Assembly (NCBI GenBank): GCA_002269645.1 | Contig: NIVC01000695.1 | Coordinates: 409,522-473,521, forward strand | Length of the DNA: 64,000 nt | Direction of reading: 5' to 3' | Source: Macrostomum lignano | Taxonomy: Eukaryota | Part shown: piece by piece, positions 26,167-63,936 of the stretch | How positions within the stretch are numbered: the first letter of the stretch is position 1 | How the letters are laid out: every line of letters starts with the position of its first letter | Notes under the pieces: model-generated | Seen by the model: only the letters and a program-made list of their open reading frames with translations | Databases searched by the model: none | What the model was told of the DNA's origin: nothing | Made by a program: the position numbers and the translations under genes

Positions 26167-49604
<23,438 letters not shown>

Positions 49605-50150: not shown

Positions 50151-50560
50151 ATTTGCATTTAGTGCTATTGATTGATTGAAAATTTTCGCGATGCTACTAA
50201 CTAGTAGCTTACGTAAGGAATCTGTTTATTTAATTTTTTAAAATCTAAGGATCTAAGCATTTAAGAAGGCGACAGAGCAAGTAAAAAACGTCGACAATAA
50301 CTGTTTAAAACCAAAAGTTTGGTCTGCTCTACTTTTATCAGCTGAAGACAAAAAAATTCTAGTTCTTGAAGAAGTTTTCGGAAAATTAGTTCATAGCCGA
50401 CTGTATCGATAATGCTAAATTTACTACAAATATACTTATTTTAAACTTAAGGCCTGCATTAAAGATTCTTAAAGTTTCTTCATGAGCGCAAAAATAGCAA
50501 TAAACGTTTTAAAACTTATTTCTTTAAGCAGGTGTTCACGGTAATTCAAAGAGCTCTTAA

Positions 50561-53500
50561 TTACTCTTTGTGGATTCCTGCAGTTTTTGCTATCTCAGCA
50601 TTCAATTTGGACTCGCTTCTGATCCCAGTTTGCTTCAGAAGTTCCGGGATGCTAGCCGCATTTAGTTGCTTCATCAGACTTTTAATGCTTCTGATGTTTA
50701 GCTGTGCCATCAGATCAGAGACACTGCGAATATTAAGTTCAGACATCAGACTTTTGACACTTTTCAATCCAAGCGTGTGCAGAAGATCACTTAGTTTTGA
50801 GCTGCCCGTCTCAACAATCAGACTGGAGAGATTTGAAATATGAAACTGCTTCATCAGAGACGTAACATTGCAGATACCAGTCTGTTCCATGAAAGCCTTT
50901 AAAGTTGGAAGACCCACTTTACGAACGATTTGCCGTAGGTTCTTAGCGTCGAGTTGCTTCATTAGTCCTTGAACATCCGAAATTCCCAGCTGACTCATTA
51001 GACATTGAAGATCAGGAATGCGTACTTGTTTCATCAAGCTCTTAAGGTTCTGAAGTCCGACCTCTCGTAATAGTTGGTGCAGACTCTTTGACCCCAGCTG
51101 GTCCATCAGCTTTGGAACGTCGGTAATGTTAAACTTGGTCATCAACTCTTTAAGATCGTCAAATCCAGCTTCCTTGATTAGAGCGCCCACTGTTCGTACA
51201 CCGCAACGCTTCAGCAGTTGACGTAGGTTCTTTGCGTCGAGTTGATTCATTAGTCCTTGAACATCCGAAATTCCCAGCTGACTCATTAGACCTTGAAGAT
51301 CAGGAATGCGTACTTGTTTCATCAAGCTCTTAAGGTTCTGAAGTCCGACCTCTCGTAATAGTTGGTGCAGACTCTTTGACCCCAGCTGGTCCATCAGCTT
51401 TGGAACGTCGGTAATGTTAAACTTGGTCATCAACTCTTTAAGATCGTCAAAGCCAGCTTCCTTGATTAGAGCGCCCACTGTTCGTACACCGCAACGCTTC
51501 AGCAGTTGACGTAGGTTCTTAGCGTCGAGTTGCTTCATTAGTCCTTGAACATCCGAAATTCCCAGCTGACTCATTAGACCTTGAAGATCAGGAATGCGTA
51601 CTTGTTTCATCAAGCTCTTAAGGTTCTGAAGTCCGACCTCTCGTAATAGTTGGTGCAGACTCTTTGACCCCAGCTGGTCCATCAGCTTTGGAACGTCGGT
51701 AATGTTAAACTTGGTCATCAACTCTTTAAGATCGTCAAAGCCAGCTTCCTTGATTAGAGTGCCCACTGTTCGCAAACCACAACGCTTCAGAAGCTGACGT
51801 AGGTTCTTGGCGTCGAGTTGATTTATGAGGTCTGTTAGAGATTTGATTTGTAGTTCGTGTCTCAGGCCACGCAAACTTTTTATTCCGAGTTGCTTCAAGA
51901 ATGCCATTAGGTTTTTGGAGCCCGTTTTTTCCATCAGTTCTGACAGCTTCTTTACATTTAACTCTTTCATTAGCCCATATACACCCTCAATTCTTGCCTG
52001 AGTTAATAAATCTGGAATGCTTGTCACACTTAGCGTTTGAACTAGCTTATTGAGGTTTGGCGAATTCAGCTTTTTCATCAAAGTGGCCAGGTTTTGAGCC
52101 TTAAGGCGTCGCATTAGGTCACGGAAGTTCAGCTGCTTTAGCTTCTGCTGAAGTGCAGAAAAGCTGGACACCTTCAGAGCATTCATCAGTGTTTCGATAT
52201 TTCGGCCATTGGCGAGGTGCCTCAGTCCGGGGATTTTTTTCAGGGCATGTATACTCTTCAGAGGTTCCAAATATTTTGACAACTTGTCAGTTATTCTGTT
52301 GACTTTCTCGACGACTGGAATTCTGGATATCGCTTTTTTAATTAACCTATCGGCAGCTTTGATTTTCTTTAGTCCCGAAATTGATTTGATAACTTTGCGA
52401 ACTTTTTTCTCCATTCTTCTGAGCTTCCGGAGTCCCGGAATCCTGTCCAACACTCCCGGGCCGTACTTGTCAACGAGTTTTCTGAGAACAGGGTTCCTGT
52501 TTACAATGCCTGTGATCTTGGCGTGTACACCTTTGATTTTTGCAACAGCAGGCAGTGCGTTGAGCTTTGCAAAAACTTTCGTCTTTAACGCTGTAAGCTT
52601 TTTTACAATCGACAGGCTCTTCAAATTTGCAGCTATTTTAGACTTTATTAAAAGAATCTTCTTTACTATCGGTACAGCCTTCAATTTTGTGATGATGAAC
52701 GTCTTGGCTGCCACAAGCGGCTTTACAAACAGCGTCTTTGCAGCGGCAGCGGCGACAGCTTTGAATTTAACGACAGCAGCTGCGACAGCTTTGAATTTAA
52801 CAAAAGCGGCAGCGGCGGCTTTGACTAGGAATGGCACAAAGAAAATTTTTTTGGATGCCTTCGTGGTTTCTGAAATTATTATTAATAATTAACTCAATTA
52901 GTTGGGGTGAATAAATTTAGACAATCAGACAATATAGCTGGTATCTCGTAAATGTATTACGTGTTATTCGATAACAACCAATATGAAAGCTAATGAGCGC
53001 TACGGTATCAAAAATGTACTATTGAGCGCATACATGCGCAACCCCCCTGATTTACACTGACCATGCGATTTACTTTTTGACCAAAAAATGTGACTTACCT
53101 GTGAAAGAAACCATACAGCAACATTAACGCAAATTTTGGGTAAACGGCAGGAGTAACTATCACTGTTCTATAAGGGCTAAATGCCTCGTCATCTAATTAG
53201 TACTACGTCTGTATTCTTTGGGGTGGGCATTTTTGCGACCCCTGGTCCACCACAATTTACGGTGACTAGATCGGCCAGGTCGGCCAGCAGTTGCGCATGT
53301 ATGATTGAGCGTGAGCGTGTGTCTGAGTGCATGTCTGGCGCTTTGCATCAGGGTGACTACCAGCCCACTTGCAAACTTCTACTTGTCTTATGCCTTATTG
53401 ATGTTTACTCACATCCAATTCTTGAGGTCCAACGTAGGCGGGCAGATTGGCAGTCTGGAGAGCATCCTTAGACTCTCTGGCCTCCTCGACATCCAAATCT

Positions 53501-53562
53501 GTTGCTTGACAGGCGACTACAGCGAGCAGCAGTGCAAGGCCGCCGATAGAGATTAAGCGCAT
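50561..53562 (-). CDS. Secreted precursor: signal peptide, acidic propiece, ~770-aa Lys/Leu/Ala-rich amphipathic body with 12-aa repeats
   Basis: Exon 1 at 53413-53562: MRLISIGGLALLLAVVACQATDLDVEEARESKDAL...GPQELD|GTGAGT. Large exon 50561-52869 follows acceptor AATTTCAG. It contains three near-identical 288-bp (96-aa = 8x12-aa) repeats. The phase between the two exons is unresolved (0 vs 1). Confidence 0.75.
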
Positions 53563-54162
53563 GGCTTTCTTTTGGAGATTTTAGTAAAATTTTTAGCGAT
53601 AGTTTTTGAAAATATAATTTAATATTGAGTTTTGGGCGTTGCCTGATCAGTTCTTCGGGTTTTAATAGAAATGCCGCATCCGAGAGACCCGCGAAGCCAT
53701 CCACACGAAAATAGCAGGATATGACAGTATAAAATGAATCCTTGATTTTTAGTTTCGCATTTTCGGTGATTCTGCTAAGCAGTGCATTGCCCCCCCCCAC
53801 TCAAGAGTGCCAACACCGTGATTCTGCAAATTTTCTGTCCTTGCTTTTTCATCTCCGTCATTTTTTTACTCCAGGATTTGAAAAAAACACTTTTGCATTG
53901 CTTGATGCTCTCTTTTTCTCTAGCGAGTGCAACCTCAAGAGAGTCAGTGGTTTCAGCTAAAGAGCAATGAGAAAGACAGAGAGCTAACGATACAGTGCAT
54001 AATGTTTAAAAAAGCAGATTTTTATAAAAGCTTTATCAATAAGTTGTGATAAAAAGTCCGAAAGTGGTATTTAAAATATTAAAACACACTACACTCATTG
54101 TATTAATTTTCGTCCTCCAGGCCAAGAACAGATTATAGAAAATACCGATGTGACGACGTACC

Positions 54163-54840
54163 TGGTGCTAAATCCACTGGTGGTAAATCAGCCTGGTGCT
54201 AAATCCCCTTGGTGCTAAATCCCCTGGTGCTAAATCCCCTTGGTGCTAAAGCCCCTGGTGCTAAAGCCCCTGGTGCTAAAGCCCCTGGTGCTAAATCCCC
54301 TGGTGCTAAATCCCCTGGTGCTAAATCCCCTGGTGCTAAATCCCCTGGTGCTAAATCCACTGGTGCTAAATCCCCTGGTGCTAAATCCCCTGGTGCTAAA
54401 TCCACTGGTGCTAAATCCCCTGGTGCTAAATCCCCTGGTGCTAAAGCCCCTGGTGCTAAAGCCCCTGGTGCTACATCCCCTGGTGCTAAAGCCCCTTGGT
54501 GCTAAAGCCCCTGGTGCTACATCCCCTGGTGCTAAAGCCCCTTGGTGCTAAAGCCCCTGGTGCTAAAGCCCCTGGTGCTAAAGCCCCTGGTGCTAAATCC
54601 ACTGGTGCTAAAGCCCCTGGTGCTACATCCCCTGGTGCTAAAGCCCCTGGTGCTACATCCCCTGGTGCTAAAGCACCTTGGTGCTAAAGCCCCTGGTGCT
54701 AAAGCCCCTGGTGCTAAAGCCCCTGGTGCTAAAGCCCCTGGTGCTACATCCCCTGGTGCTAAAGCCCCTTGGTGCTAAAGCCCCTGGTGCTAAAGCCCCT
54801 GGTGCTAAAGCCCCTGGTGCTAAATCCACTGGTGCTAAAG
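54163..54840. repeat. 15-bp minisatellite (TGGTGCTAAA[G/T]CCCC)n
   Basis: Direct tandem repeats with occasional 16-bp units. Confidence 0.95.
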
Positions 54841-55280
54841 CCTCGAGTGCTACTATGTCTCATATGCTCTATGTCTCATAAAAAAACCTTTAAAATCCAA
54901 AATTTGAAACCTATCCGCTCTTGTTTGATATGTTTAAGCAGACACATTCTTTTGCAGGTAGAGTTAGTTGTAAAACTTAGTAAGAGACCCTTTTTATATT
55001 ATACTCTTGAAAATTTGCTATATTTAGCTTTGCACTGAGTCAAAGGACGTCATTGTCATTTGTACGTCATTGTGCACTGGAAAGGCTTTGAAGAAAGAGA
55101 AACGTATTGGCCTTTTGTGCCAGAAGCGCAAAATATCAGCCTACTGCAGGACCCTAATGGAAAAGTAAATCCGTCTTTTTTTCATAATTTCTTGCATCGC
55201 TCCGTGTTACAAAATCCTTGATTACTTAGCGAGCTCGGCCTTCTAAATTCATGAGATGCGCGCAAACGAGAGAAGAAGCA

Positions 55281-59354: not shown

Positions 59355-61248
59355 TTAGAATGTGCACAGAGTCTTGACAGATCGGCAGCAACCACTCTGA
59401 CACTGTCCGCAGTAGGTCTTAGCGTTTCCAATGTCGTTATTGTCTCGCAGGTACTTGATATAGTCCTTCCATCCTGTGCACGTGTCGCCCCAGGAGTCGC
59501 CCCAGAAGCAGCTCTCGTCGGCTTCGGGAGCGGAGGTGTCGCTAGCGCACTGGCCGTCCCAGTTACAGCTCTTCTTGTTGCCGCAGGGTGTGCCAACGGG
59601 GGCCCGGAGACCGCCGCCAGTCACTCCGCTTGAAGAGCCGGCGGTCGGAGTGCAGAAAATCTTGGCGCAGATCAGTGCCGGATTAGAAGAGACGTCATCA
59701 GTGAGGAAGAACTTGCCCGGACTGGATGGATAGGCGAGGCGACACACCTGGTCCAGGGTCATGCGACCGCCTTCGCGAGTCGTTGTAGCCATTGAGGAGT
59801 CTGGAGAGCCTTGACGCGACTTCAAGCACTCGGCCTTGCCTAATAAGTTGTAAATTTTATAACTCTTTGTAATTTTTCAAAAATTTTGCAAAAAGCCTGT
59901 ATGTTAGATCAAGGACCACTATGAACACTAGGAACAAGTCTAGTAGTCCTTGTGTTAGATTTGTGCTGCGTACCTGTAGCCAGATAGTTTTTCATGAAGG
60001 TCACTGTGCAGGGAGAAAACCTATACGAGTTGGCGACGTCGCTAAGGGAGTATGACCCCGCAGAAGGCGACATTAGGAACTTGTAAGCCACTTTGCATGC
60101 CGGTTGGTCATTGTCGTGATCGGATCCCATGTTGTGGGCCAACTCGTGCGACGCTGTGCCCCAGCTCTGCAAGCCCTGGTCCTCATTGATGCTAACTCGC
60201 GTGTCCTGACAGGCGCCTCCAACGTAAGCCATGCCGCACACTGCGGTGTTGCCGCCACTCTGGATATCCGTGCGCGTAAACGCCATCACGTGATCGGCAG
60301 TCTTGCCAACGGCGTAAGACTTGATGTAGCCGAGGATTGCACTGGCGTCGGTTGCTGTTCAGTAGCGGATTGAGGAAGTGATAATTTAATAGATTTAGCT
60401 ATTTCAGAATTATTAGCAAAATTTATCGTACTTACCGTCAGAGGAACCAGCTGGAGGCATCCATTGCGAATCAGCCTGCGTCTTTGCCACGGTGAGGCCG
60501 GTGCACTTGACACTCATAGACGGGTTTCCGACGTTTCTGAACGCTGTATCGATTCCGTTCAAAATGTGCGTGTAATAGTAGTGAAGCTCTGTCATAGCTG
60601 CAGCATCAGTGCTGTAAATTGTCTTAAACGCGTTCCACACAGTGTGGTCCAGAAGCAAAAGGAGCTCCACCTCAAGATCTGTAGCAGCTTGATTGGACTG
60701 ACGCTTCTTGCGGCTCATTACTTGCATGACCTTCGACTTGTCAATCTGCGACTCAATACCGTCTGGCTGGGCAATGTTGCGTGTGACTTGATGCTCTGAA
60801 GCACCGCTTGGCTTGACGAAATAGGATGTACCTTCGTGCATCACGTGACCGCTGAAGCGTTTCTTTCCCTTCTCGTGTCGAACACTGATGACAGACTTGC
60901 TCTCGATGTCCCTGTAGTGAGCGTGACTCGCGTGGTGAGCTTGGCGAGCTGAAAAAGTCCTGGAGACTCCATTCTCTCTCACGGTCATTGGCACACTCTC
61001 AAAGGCGTCAGTCTTTTCCAATGGAATGCGGACCTTCTTGTTCGTGCTGGGCAGCTGTATTTCGATCTCCATAGACGAAGGATGCGGTCCATCGTTGCTG
61101 GATCGAGTCACAGACACTGAAGCCTGGGCCGCAGCAACAGCGAGCAGAAATATGACTGCAAAATTGATAAGATAATTACACTGAAAACTTGCTTCGATGT
61201 GTGTTGTGACACATGAATGATAAATTACTACTTACCAATGCGCAGCAT
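59355..61248 (-). CDS. Secreted ADAMTS-like reprolysin (M12B) zinc metalloprotease, 4 exons, ~532 aa
   Basis: Exons: 61236-61248, 60436-61155, 59974-60354, 59355-59839, all joined by phase-1 GT-AG introns. Signal MLRIVIFLLAVAAAQA, prodomain ending in furin site RKKR, HELAHNMGSDHD zinc motif, Met-turn FLMSP, and a Cys-rich C-terminal domain. No TSP1 repeats seen. Confidence 0.92.
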
Positions 61249-63118: not shown

Positions 63119-63936
63119 ATGAAAATGCTGAAAATAGGTGAGTTAACCACAGAACTTACAGAAGCTCTGTGGAGTCAACTGCATATGCTTCAGGAAATTA
63201 CGTATGTTTACGAGTCGTACGTGCTCAATATTTTAGCTATATTTCTGGCCGTCTCTGCGGCAGCCCAGGCCTCGGTGTCCGTGACGCAATCCAGCGGTGA
63301 CGGACCTCACCCGTCCTCCATGGAGATCGAGCTCCAGCTGCCCGACACCGACAAGAAAGTCCGCATCCCGCTGACCAAGACTGCTCCGTTGGATGGCGCT
63401 GTGGTCACTGTGACGGACGGTGGAGTCTCCAGGACGTTCTCTGGCCGACAAGCCCAACACGGAGATCAAGCTCACTACAGAAATGTTGATAGCAAGTCTG
63501 TGATCAGCGTTCGACACGAGAACGGCACAAAGCGCATCAGCGGTCACGTGACGCACAAAGGCACCTCGTATGTCATCCAGCCGATCGGCGACTCTGGGCA
63601 CCGCGTCTCCAAAACCAAAAAAACTGCGGATGGGACGCAGCCCGAGCAGTTGCTGAGTCGCAAGAAACGCCGAGTGAACCGAGAGGCTACCGAATACGAA
63701 GTCGAGATTCACATCCTCATTGATCACACCGTTTGGAAGGCTTTCAAGACAATTTTCGGTACGGATGACAAAGCCCTGACTGAGCTGCACTTCTACTATT
63801 CTCACATTGTGATTGGCATGGACACGGTCTTCAGGAAGCATCGGCAGTCCGTCAATCAGTGTCAGGTGCATTGGGTTAACAGTAGCCAAGACTGAAGCCG
63901 ATGCAAAGTGGATGCCTCCGGATAGCTCGGCTGATG
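63119..63936 (+). pseudogene. Inverted paralog of the M12B protease (exons 1-2 in window), with +1 frameshift
   Basis: Exon 1 at 63119-63137 and exon 2 at 63237-63936, with the same intron positions as the 61248 gene. Shared motifs DGPHPSSMEIE and SRKKR. Frame shifts near 63835 and homology resumes in another frame (SIGSPSISVRCIGLTVAKTEADAKWMPP). May be a sequencing error; the gene continues beyond the window. Confidence 0.75.

Follow-up and report, generated by a model that had tools for sequence, protein, structure and literature searches.

The closest described counterparts of the protein analyzed here are the MgtE_N-type domains, which form a right-handed superhelix with a hydrophobic core; this superhelix is common to MgtE, to the ARM-like motifs of FliG and to the heads of the periplasmic proteins FlgY, FlbB and MotE (PMC13023049). 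We analyzed a stretch of 64,000 nucleotides (nt) from Macrostomum lignano (assembly GCA_002269645.1, contig NIVC01000695.1, positions 409,522 to 473,521), referred to below as the window, which holds on its minus strand a gene whose product carries 45 consecutive units of 12 amino acids (aa); all gene coordinates are positions in this window. A 12-residue MgtE_N-like helix-turn repeat is in itself already known, what is new here being a 45-unit, cationic and predicted secreted array in an orphan animal gene. Judged from its genomic sequence, the gene is real and lineage-restricted, has two coding exons and encodes a predicted secreted protein of about 815-820 aa; we give a probability of roughly 45% to the reading that this product is a secreted, cationic rod of the alpha-solenoid type, restricted to its lineage, that has a structural role or binds polyanions.

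The array occupies positions 50591 to 52210 (residues 217-756 of the protein encoded by exon 2), and a register table gave exactly 45 consecutive helix-turn units in perfect register, with no insertion or deletion; the original prediction, made by a model from the letters of this DNA, had counted about 45. The position profile of the units yielded the consensus G-I-K-[NS]-L-x-x-L-M-K-Q-L, in which five of the 12 positions are conserved as hydrophobic (2, 5, 8, 9 and 12), position 8 being Leu in 42 of the 45 units and position 9 being Met in 25 of them. Autocorrelation at a lag of 12 residues was 0.27, compared with 0.084 +/- 0.011 for shuffled sequences (z = 16.7), and z remained at 13.2 when two redundant block copies were left out.

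Within the array, positions 50951 to 51814 hold three near-identical copies of a 288-bp higher-order repeat (96 aa, 8 units), again as the model had described: Tandem Repeats Finder (TRF) reported a 288-bp unit with 3.1 copies and 97% matches at 50930-51823, and the three full copies differ from each other by 4-9 of their 288 nt. A 36-bp DNA repeat was not found by TRF, therefore the 12-aa period exists at the protein level only. In the flanks of the three copies, which have diverged, the 8-unit phase can still be recognized, with an in-phase identity of 0.375 vs 0.21-0.32 out of phase, and a weaker secondary maximum of identity appears at a shift of 4 units (48 aa). Unequal crossing-over of the 288-bp block would lengthen or shorten such an array.

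The codons of the array carry the signature of a protein under constraint. Pairwise nt identity among the 29 distinct units was 0.38 at the first codon position, 0.57 at the second and 0.30 at the third, and the Leu at position 8 is written with all six Leu codons. Since third positions are near random and all six codons are used for this Leu, selection acts on the protein; as read from these codons, the units demonstrate that selection has long maintained the 12-aa pattern in the protein through the divergence of the DNA. The open reading frames (ORFs) found in the minisatellites of the window have no comparable codon-position signature.

The structure was predicted with AlphaFold2 (AF2) for a segment of 192 residues (aa 349-540, 16 units), which was aligned for this purpose with two more segments of the protein lying in the same phase. 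The resulting model had a predicted local distance difference test score (pLDDT) of 91.0 and a predicted template modeling score (pTM) of 0.81, and it consists of sixteen helices of 7-8 residues with 4-residue turns at a strict spacing of 12 aa. Each unit is modeled as a turn of four residues, G/N-x-x-[S/N/D], plus one amphipathic helix of 8 residues, in agreement with the G/N/D turn, N-cap and short amphipathic helix that had been read from the letters, and the hydrophobic moment of the repeats on the scale of a helix exceeded that of shuffles with z = 6.6. The alpha-solenoid class is defined by tandem helix-turn units that keep a constant register and stack, by prediction or observation, into one elongated domain; we assign to it the array of 45 units, sixteen of which are predicted as one domain, with a stacking geometry that we infer. 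Searched with Foldseek, the pLDDT 91 model had no significant counterpart either in the PDB, where the best of 41 matches reached E 0.82 and template modeling (TM) scores stayed at 0.28 or less, or in a set of viral models (best E 0.07). Neither MgtE nor FliG appeared in the PDB list, a result to be read knowing that Foldseek may be insensitive to repeats of short helices. The combined AlphaFold and Foldseek check that had been proposed for this protein therefore gave one positive part, a confident helical repeat, and one empty part, no PDB or viral-model match. The only matches of a full-length model, weak ones to ARM/HEAT proteins, were discarded as generic (TM < 0.22), that model being of low confidence.

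The whole protein contains 138 Lys and Arg and 56 Asp and Glu residues, for a net charge of +82 and an isoelectric point (pI) of 10.4; the repeat region accounts for a net charge of about +35. Ahead of the array lies a basic region of 216 aa (52211 to 52858), rich in Lys, Ala, Val, Leu and Ile, with 54 Lys and Arg against 7 Asp and Glu residues (pI 11.5, net +47), in which the first acidic residue comes only at position 130. The composition is the one originally predicted, a K/A/L/I/V-rich stretch almost free of acidic residues, its length being 216 aa and not the 250 or so first estimated. This region has a periodicity of 20 aa (z = 5.2), with a Pro about every 20 residues in 'xIPxxxK' motifs at the unit boundaries and 18-residue helices predicted in a low-confidence AF2 model. 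Part of the region is due to a 30-bp tandem duplication at 52746 to 52824 (TRF, 2.6 copies, 85% matches), which encodes VKFKAVAAA(V/A). The basic region had a mean hydrophobic moment of 0.277, its shuffles one of 0.244 +/- 0.029 (z = 1.2), and the windows of highest amphipathicity within it are polar, with a mean hydrophobicity of about -0.6.

A single frame is open on the minus strand from 52870 down to the stop codon at 50561-50563, with no stops in 769 codons, and the other five frames over the same ~2.3 kb contain 22-90 stops each; the frame closes with the C-terminal tail AKTAGIHKE and the stop TAA (50561 to 50590). The first Met of the exon-2 protein is at residue 148 and the frame is open well upstream of it, so that an upstream start exon is needed. 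A candidate lies about 540-550 nt upstream of the large exon, with an ATG at 53562 in the context GCCATG. Its first 20 residues, start codon included, resemble a signal peptide (MRLISIGGLALLLAVVACQA, 53503 to 53562); by eye they show a basic n-region, a hydrophobic core of 13 residues and C-Q-A ahead of the putative cut, with small residues at -3 and -1 relative to it. An acidic piece of 30 aa follows up to the end of exon 1 (TDLDVEEARESKDALQTANLPAYVGPQELD, 53413 to 53502), having 8 acidic and 2 basic residues (net -6). The signal and acidic propiece that the earlier reading had implied in front of the basic region are thus found in the sequence as a two-exon layout of secreted type.

Two GT-AG pairings join the exons in frame, each with one terminal stop. 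In model 1 the donor GAT|GTGAGT at 53412 (exon 1 ending at 53413) is paired with the acceptor AAG|G, exon 2 starting from 52858, which gives an intron of 554 nt (52859-53412, GTGAGT...CGAAG) and a protein of 815 aa; in model 2 the donor GTGA|GTAAAC at 53408 (exon 1 ending at 53409) is paired with TTTCAG|A, exon 2 starting from 52869, which gives an intron of 539 nt (52870 to 53408, GTAAAC...TTTCAG) and a protein of 820 aa. Pairing the strongest donor (GAT|GTGAGT, 53412) with the strongest acceptor (TTTCAG|, 52870/52869) does not keep the reading frame. Splicing of exon 1 to the large exon, on which the original prediction depended, is backed by two canonical in-frame pairings and weakened by the fact that the most obvious junction breaks the frame. 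A one-base error in a run of seven A just inside exon 2 had been considered as the cause of this phase problem and was dropped once the two canonical pairings were found. The intron also contains, at 53090-53101, an acceptor consensus directly abutting a donor consensus, TTTCTTTCACAG|GTAAGT, that is, a zero-length exon resembling a recursive splice site; in an intron of 540 nt such a pair is probably due to chance. A candidate polyadenylation signal, ATTAAATAAA, was located by pattern search, as a match to the consensus, about 330 nt past the stop (50225 to 50234).

Searches for relatives were done at several levels. A word-indexed search in which the exon-2 protein was compared with 5.8 billion proteins gave no match at E <= 1e-3, and the same type of search with an alignment of the array and 15 bacterial arrays found nothing at E <= 1e-5. 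When HMMER was run against 1.84 billion cluster representatives, 49 matches reached E <= 1e-3 (best 3e-28), all of which are themselves 12-residue periodic arrays and none of which exceeds 35% identity. The majority are bacterial, namely toxin-like proteins headed by eCIS_core, signal-peptide proteins, RTX proteins and a phage tape-measure-like protein; the few eukaryotic ones are unrelated proteins with 12-aa insertions of their own (a snail degenerin, a mussel protein, a plant protein and a CH/LIM-domain protein). The PDB returned nothing by sequence search, either with the protein or with a profile of the 48-aa repeat, and apart from the MgtE_N matches described below no other Pfam or NCBIfam domain was above threshold in the protein, the insect allergen repeat of Pfam being a very weak match (E = 0.072). 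Rfam detected no RNA family in the window, and a literature search with peptide strings from the protein found no paper. The metagenome scan returned a single locus (L001), whose 24% match was rejected as spurious, the contig being bacterial and its ORFs resembling by eye a phosphoglycerate mutase and a Fic-type protein.

Against Pfam, the exon-2 protein scored 59.5 bits and the array alone 63 bits with MgtE_N (PF03448), whose gathering threshold is 25.9 bits, in an alignment that pairs 82 residues with 82 model positions and has no gaps; of TIGR00400, the equivalog model of MgtE, the N-domain part also matched (E = 1.2e-9), far below the whole-protein cut-off. When the array was reversed it still reached 44.7 bits with MgtE_N, above the threshold, so that passing this model is not specific for membership. 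Column-permuted arrays lost MgtE_N (0, 0 and 11 bits) and gained unrelated families at 30-44 bits, and a full shuffle of the array gave no Pfam match. E-values are inflated by the repeats, as these matches of permuted controls to unrelated families indicate. In phmmer comparisons the reversed query scored higher than the forward one with P0007 (85 vs 67 bits), P0015 (64 vs 60) and P0020 (58 vs 55), and the eCIS_core-type proteins favored the forward query (84-102 bits vs 30-48 reversed). The usual context of MgtE_N, a bacterial domain of the cytosol or periplasm that is joined to CBS plus the MgtE membrane domain, to FliG, or to the long helix of FlgY type, is absent from the animal gene. As far as sequence comparison can tell, the resemblance is real at the level of an ordered periodic pattern, a shared pattern and not homology, common ancestry being unproven. 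The statement that the protein belongs to no recognized family held in that no relative was found, and has to be softened in that Pfam does call MgtE_N, if only as a pattern. In the same way, "novel helical-solenoid repeat" was reasonable as to the solenoid; the word novel needs qualification, the 12-residue pattern being that of MgtE_N and occurring in long arrays in many bacterial secreted proteins.

Among the bacterial matches, P0002-P0004, P0006 and P0008-P0010 form a family of large proteins in which a long helical region and two hydrophobic stretches, bearing a conserved 'NLVWGFIWGE...GD(I/L/V)RD' motif, are followed by a 12-residue array of 20-30 units and then by a variable C-terminal domain; at least one of them (P0002) starts with an eCIS_core (DUF4157) head, and one is annotated 'MgtE', apparently on its repeats only. 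From this architecture, they look like proteins of polymorphic toxin type with the repeat as a stalk.

How could the 45 units be put together? In the reading that we favor, positions 2, 5, 8, 9 and 12 of successive units would stack into a continuous Leu/Met/Ile core and the whole array would form one long alpha-solenoid rod, with about four helices per superhelical turn, a value suggested by the 48/96-aa sub-periodicity and by the four-membered superhelix described for MgtE_N-type domains. The surface of the rod would be made of the Lys, Arg, Gln, Glu and Ser residues of positions 3, 6, 7, 10 and 11, and the Lys/Ala-rich helical region may cap its N-terminal end. Such a protein would most likely be an extracellular structural, spacer or adhesive component that binds polyanions along its length (glycans, mucus, matrix or microbial surfaces), and cross-linking through its many lysines and few odd cysteines is conceivable. 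By analogy, an extracellular precedent is offered by the bacterial arrays of like pattern that come with signal peptides, RTX repeats or toxin-type eCIS_core heads. A bolder form of this proposal, which we regard as unlikely though not negligible, is that the protein represents an undescribed alpha-solenoid, with one 8-residue helix per 12-residue rung, 45 rungs and no solved analogue, that arose independently in animals; its polycationic rod would serve as an extracellular material or adhesive, or as a scaffold binding polyanions or microbes, and the bacterial MgtE_N-like arrays would be convergent.

Several observations weigh against the secreted rod. No orthologue was found among the 5.8 billion proteins searched by words, the 1.84 billion representatives searched by HMMER or in the metagenome scan, and no paralogue was found in the window, where the tblastn matches outside the gene are translations of minisatellites with E >= 0.07. 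The single-sequence AF2 model of the full-length protein is poor (pLDDT 48), although it nonetheless shows a short helix every 12 residues, and the alignment behind the better model consists of three rows, all taken from the protein itself; AF2 is generous with regular repeats. Handedness, pitch, surface charge and the geometry of the rod were derived by reasoning and not read from model coordinates, charge and shape are the only grounds on which a structural or binding role is proposed, and both gene and product are known from genomic sequence alone.

Other explanations were weighed against the same evidence. In antimicrobial and cytolytic precursors, as in our protein, a signal is followed by an acidic piece and then by a cationic Lys/Leu-rich part, and on that ground our protein might be a precursor polyprotein from which cationic membrane-active or antimicrobial peptides are cut, out of the basic region and/or the repeats, once signal and propiece are removed. 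The usual layout is indeed present (net -6 in the acidic piece, net +82 overall), every unit has an amphipathic helix (z = 6.6) and a KK pair stands at residues 3-4 of the exon-2 protein. We nevertheless consider this improbable, because the 18 dibasic pairs of the whole protein are irregular, with one KR per 96 aa in the array and no regular cleavage sites or spacers, a helix of 8 residues on its own lacks the length to cross or disrupt a bilayer, the units show the pattern of a packed core and are folded by AF2 as one domain (pLDDT 91), the N-terminal region is no more amphipathic than shuffles (z = 1.2), its best windows being too polar to insert, and a propiece of net -6 is unable to balance about +82, an imbalance too large for such precursors. 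The cytolytic, membrane-active polyprotein of the original prediction is not supported, in view of the irregular dibasic sites, the five conserved core positions and the z of 1.2 of the N-terminal region. A lipid-binding or lipid-carrying secreted protein comparable to exchangeable apolipoproteins, in which the Pro-split helices of ~20 aa and perhaps the Met/Leu-rich faces of the repeats would wrap lipid, likewise meets with little credit from us. Exchangeable apolipoproteins are made of 11/22-residue amphipathic helices split by Pro, which recalls the ~20-aa periodicity, Pro boundaries and predicted 18-residue helices of the N-terminal region, and the Met found at repeat position 9 in 25 of the 45 units and the very weak allergen repeat match (E = 0.072) point the same way; but those N-terminal helices are not significantly amphipathic (z = 1.2), the acidic residues typical of class-A lipid-binding helices are almost absent from the region (7 in 216 aa), no lipid-binding family reaches threshold, and the hydrophobic residues of the repeats are explained by a solenoid core.

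The chances are also low that the protein is a true homologue of the MgtE_N/FliG/FlgY-type superhelix of bacteria, be it that a secreted protein with 12-residue repeats was acquired from bacteria by horizontal transfer or that the kinship is very ancient. In its favor can be cited the MgtE_N scores (59.5-63 bits vs a threshold of 25.9), TIGR00400 (E = 1.2e-9), phmmer alignments to bacterial arrays that are gap-free over ~300 residues with E down to 1e-23, and the preference of eCIS_core-type proteins for the forward query (84-102 bits vs 30-48 reversed). These are offset by the reversed sequence, which passes MgtE_N at 44.7 bits and matches or beats the forward one on P0007, P0015 and P0020, by identities of only 13-30%, by column-permuted controls reaching unrelated families at up to 44 bits, by the absence of MgtE or FliG from the Foldseek matches and the empty PDB profile search, and by the gene itself, which has an intron and a eukaryotic signal exon and shares no non-repeat domain with any bacterial match. 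Finally, the frame could be young or decaying and functionless, either a by-product of tandem duplication in a minisatellite-rich genome or a gene that is never expressed. The window does contain 25 strong tandem arrays, many giving long ORFs in several frames, no relative was found in the protein or metagenome searches, the best donor and best acceptor are out of phase, and the differences between the recent copies are about half synonymous (4:4, 5:4 and 2:2), too few to show constraint. Yet, in contrast to what is seen in the minisatellite ORFs, a single one of the six frames stays open across 2.3 kb, TRF finds the 288-bp repeat alone and no 36-bp one, and the pattern is kept at codon positions 1 and 2 with the third near random, which requires long-standing selection on the protein, making a functionless frame a poor prospect.

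Regarding the rest of the window, its guanine-cytosine (GC) content is about 38-46% over most of the length and it looks like animal nuclear DNA. The 25 strong minisatellite arrays have periods of 9-125 bp, some being longer than 1 kb, and reach an exceptional density at 28500-49200 and 54161-54842; they contain long spurious ORFs in several frames, with strong local swings of GC skew at 38-44 kb, and the gene is flanked by arrays at 48449-49215 and 54161-54842. An exon for the C-terminal part of an Inscuteable homologue lies at 26167-26634 on the minus strand (Pfam Insc_C, E = 5.7e-38); its best database relative, from the sea slug Elysia marginata, is only 46% identical, and therefore the source animal is poorly represented in the protein sets searched. 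At 78-1633, on the minus strand, there is a remnant of a retrotransposon pol gene with the zinc-binding and core domains of an integrase (Pfam, 78-923); an ORF resembling by eye a reverse transcriptase/RNase H is found upstream in another frame, the remnant being probably frameshifted.

Two divergent ORFs, at 60413-61117 on the minus strand and 63119-63895 on the plus strand, are 59% identical over 191 aa (E = 2e-83), and each has a furin-like site (RKKR/RKKRR), after which comes the conserved segment 'EVE(L/I)..L(L/I)DHTVW.AFKTI'. No match was obtained for either in Pfam or the PDB; by eye they recall the pro-domain and the start of the catalytic domain of reprolysin/ADAM-type proteases, an assignment that Pfam and the PDB did not confirm. 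A Cys-rich ORF at 59355-59825 on the minus strand may be a downstream exon of the ORF at 60413-61117.

Orphan repeat proteins abound in invertebrate genomes; this one stands out by its perfect register, by a confident model that lacks a solved analogue and by the lesson of its controls. If the 45-unit protein is expressed, it would provide a secreted animal protein with a solenoid that is very long, perfectly phased and built of a single helix per unit, a rare combination, having a confident predicted structure and no solved counterpart. It would serve as a natural template for designed repeat rods, would test whether the 12-residue 'MgtE_N' pattern arose more than once, and would illustrate how a protein can be built through unequal crossing-over of an 8-unit block. 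The controls have a use of their own for annotation: a reversed or permuted periodic protein obtains 30-45 bits in Pfam and up to 85 bits in phmmer, which makes automatic 'MgtE' labels on repeat proteins suspect, and annotation pipelines should take into account that the MgtE_N model and phmmer E-values down to 1e-28 can be reached by pattern alone.

Compared with known systems, the protein resembles ARM/HEAT repeats in being a predicted elongated stack of short helices with a continuous hydrophobic core; those have units of 40-47 aa with 2-3 helices and are mostly intracellular, and their structural similarity to our models did not go beyond a TM score of 0.28. The bacterial arrays, which include proteins headed by eCIS_core/DUF4157 (P0002-P0004), signal-peptide proteins (P0007, P0024), RTX proteins (P0020, P0025) and a phage tape-measure-like protein (P0005), come closer: their 12-aa units, of the form L-x-x-L-G-x-x-x-L-K-x-L, follow one another by the dozen without gaps, Pfam calls these arrays MgtE_N as well, and they stand in extracellular proteins; they differ in being 13-30% identical to our array, mostly acidic or neutral (by eye rich in Glu and Asp) and joined to other domains, and what they offer is an analogy, that of a spacer or stalk, not a mechanism. 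With the MgtE_N superhelix the protein shares the period of 12 residues, the single short helix plus turn and hydrophobic residues at equivalent positions. The MgtE_N domain of MgtE is acidic, cytosolic and fused to CBS and membrane domains, whereas the present protein is basic, predicted to be secreted and free of any other domain, and where the known domains have about 4-10 helices, this one has 45.

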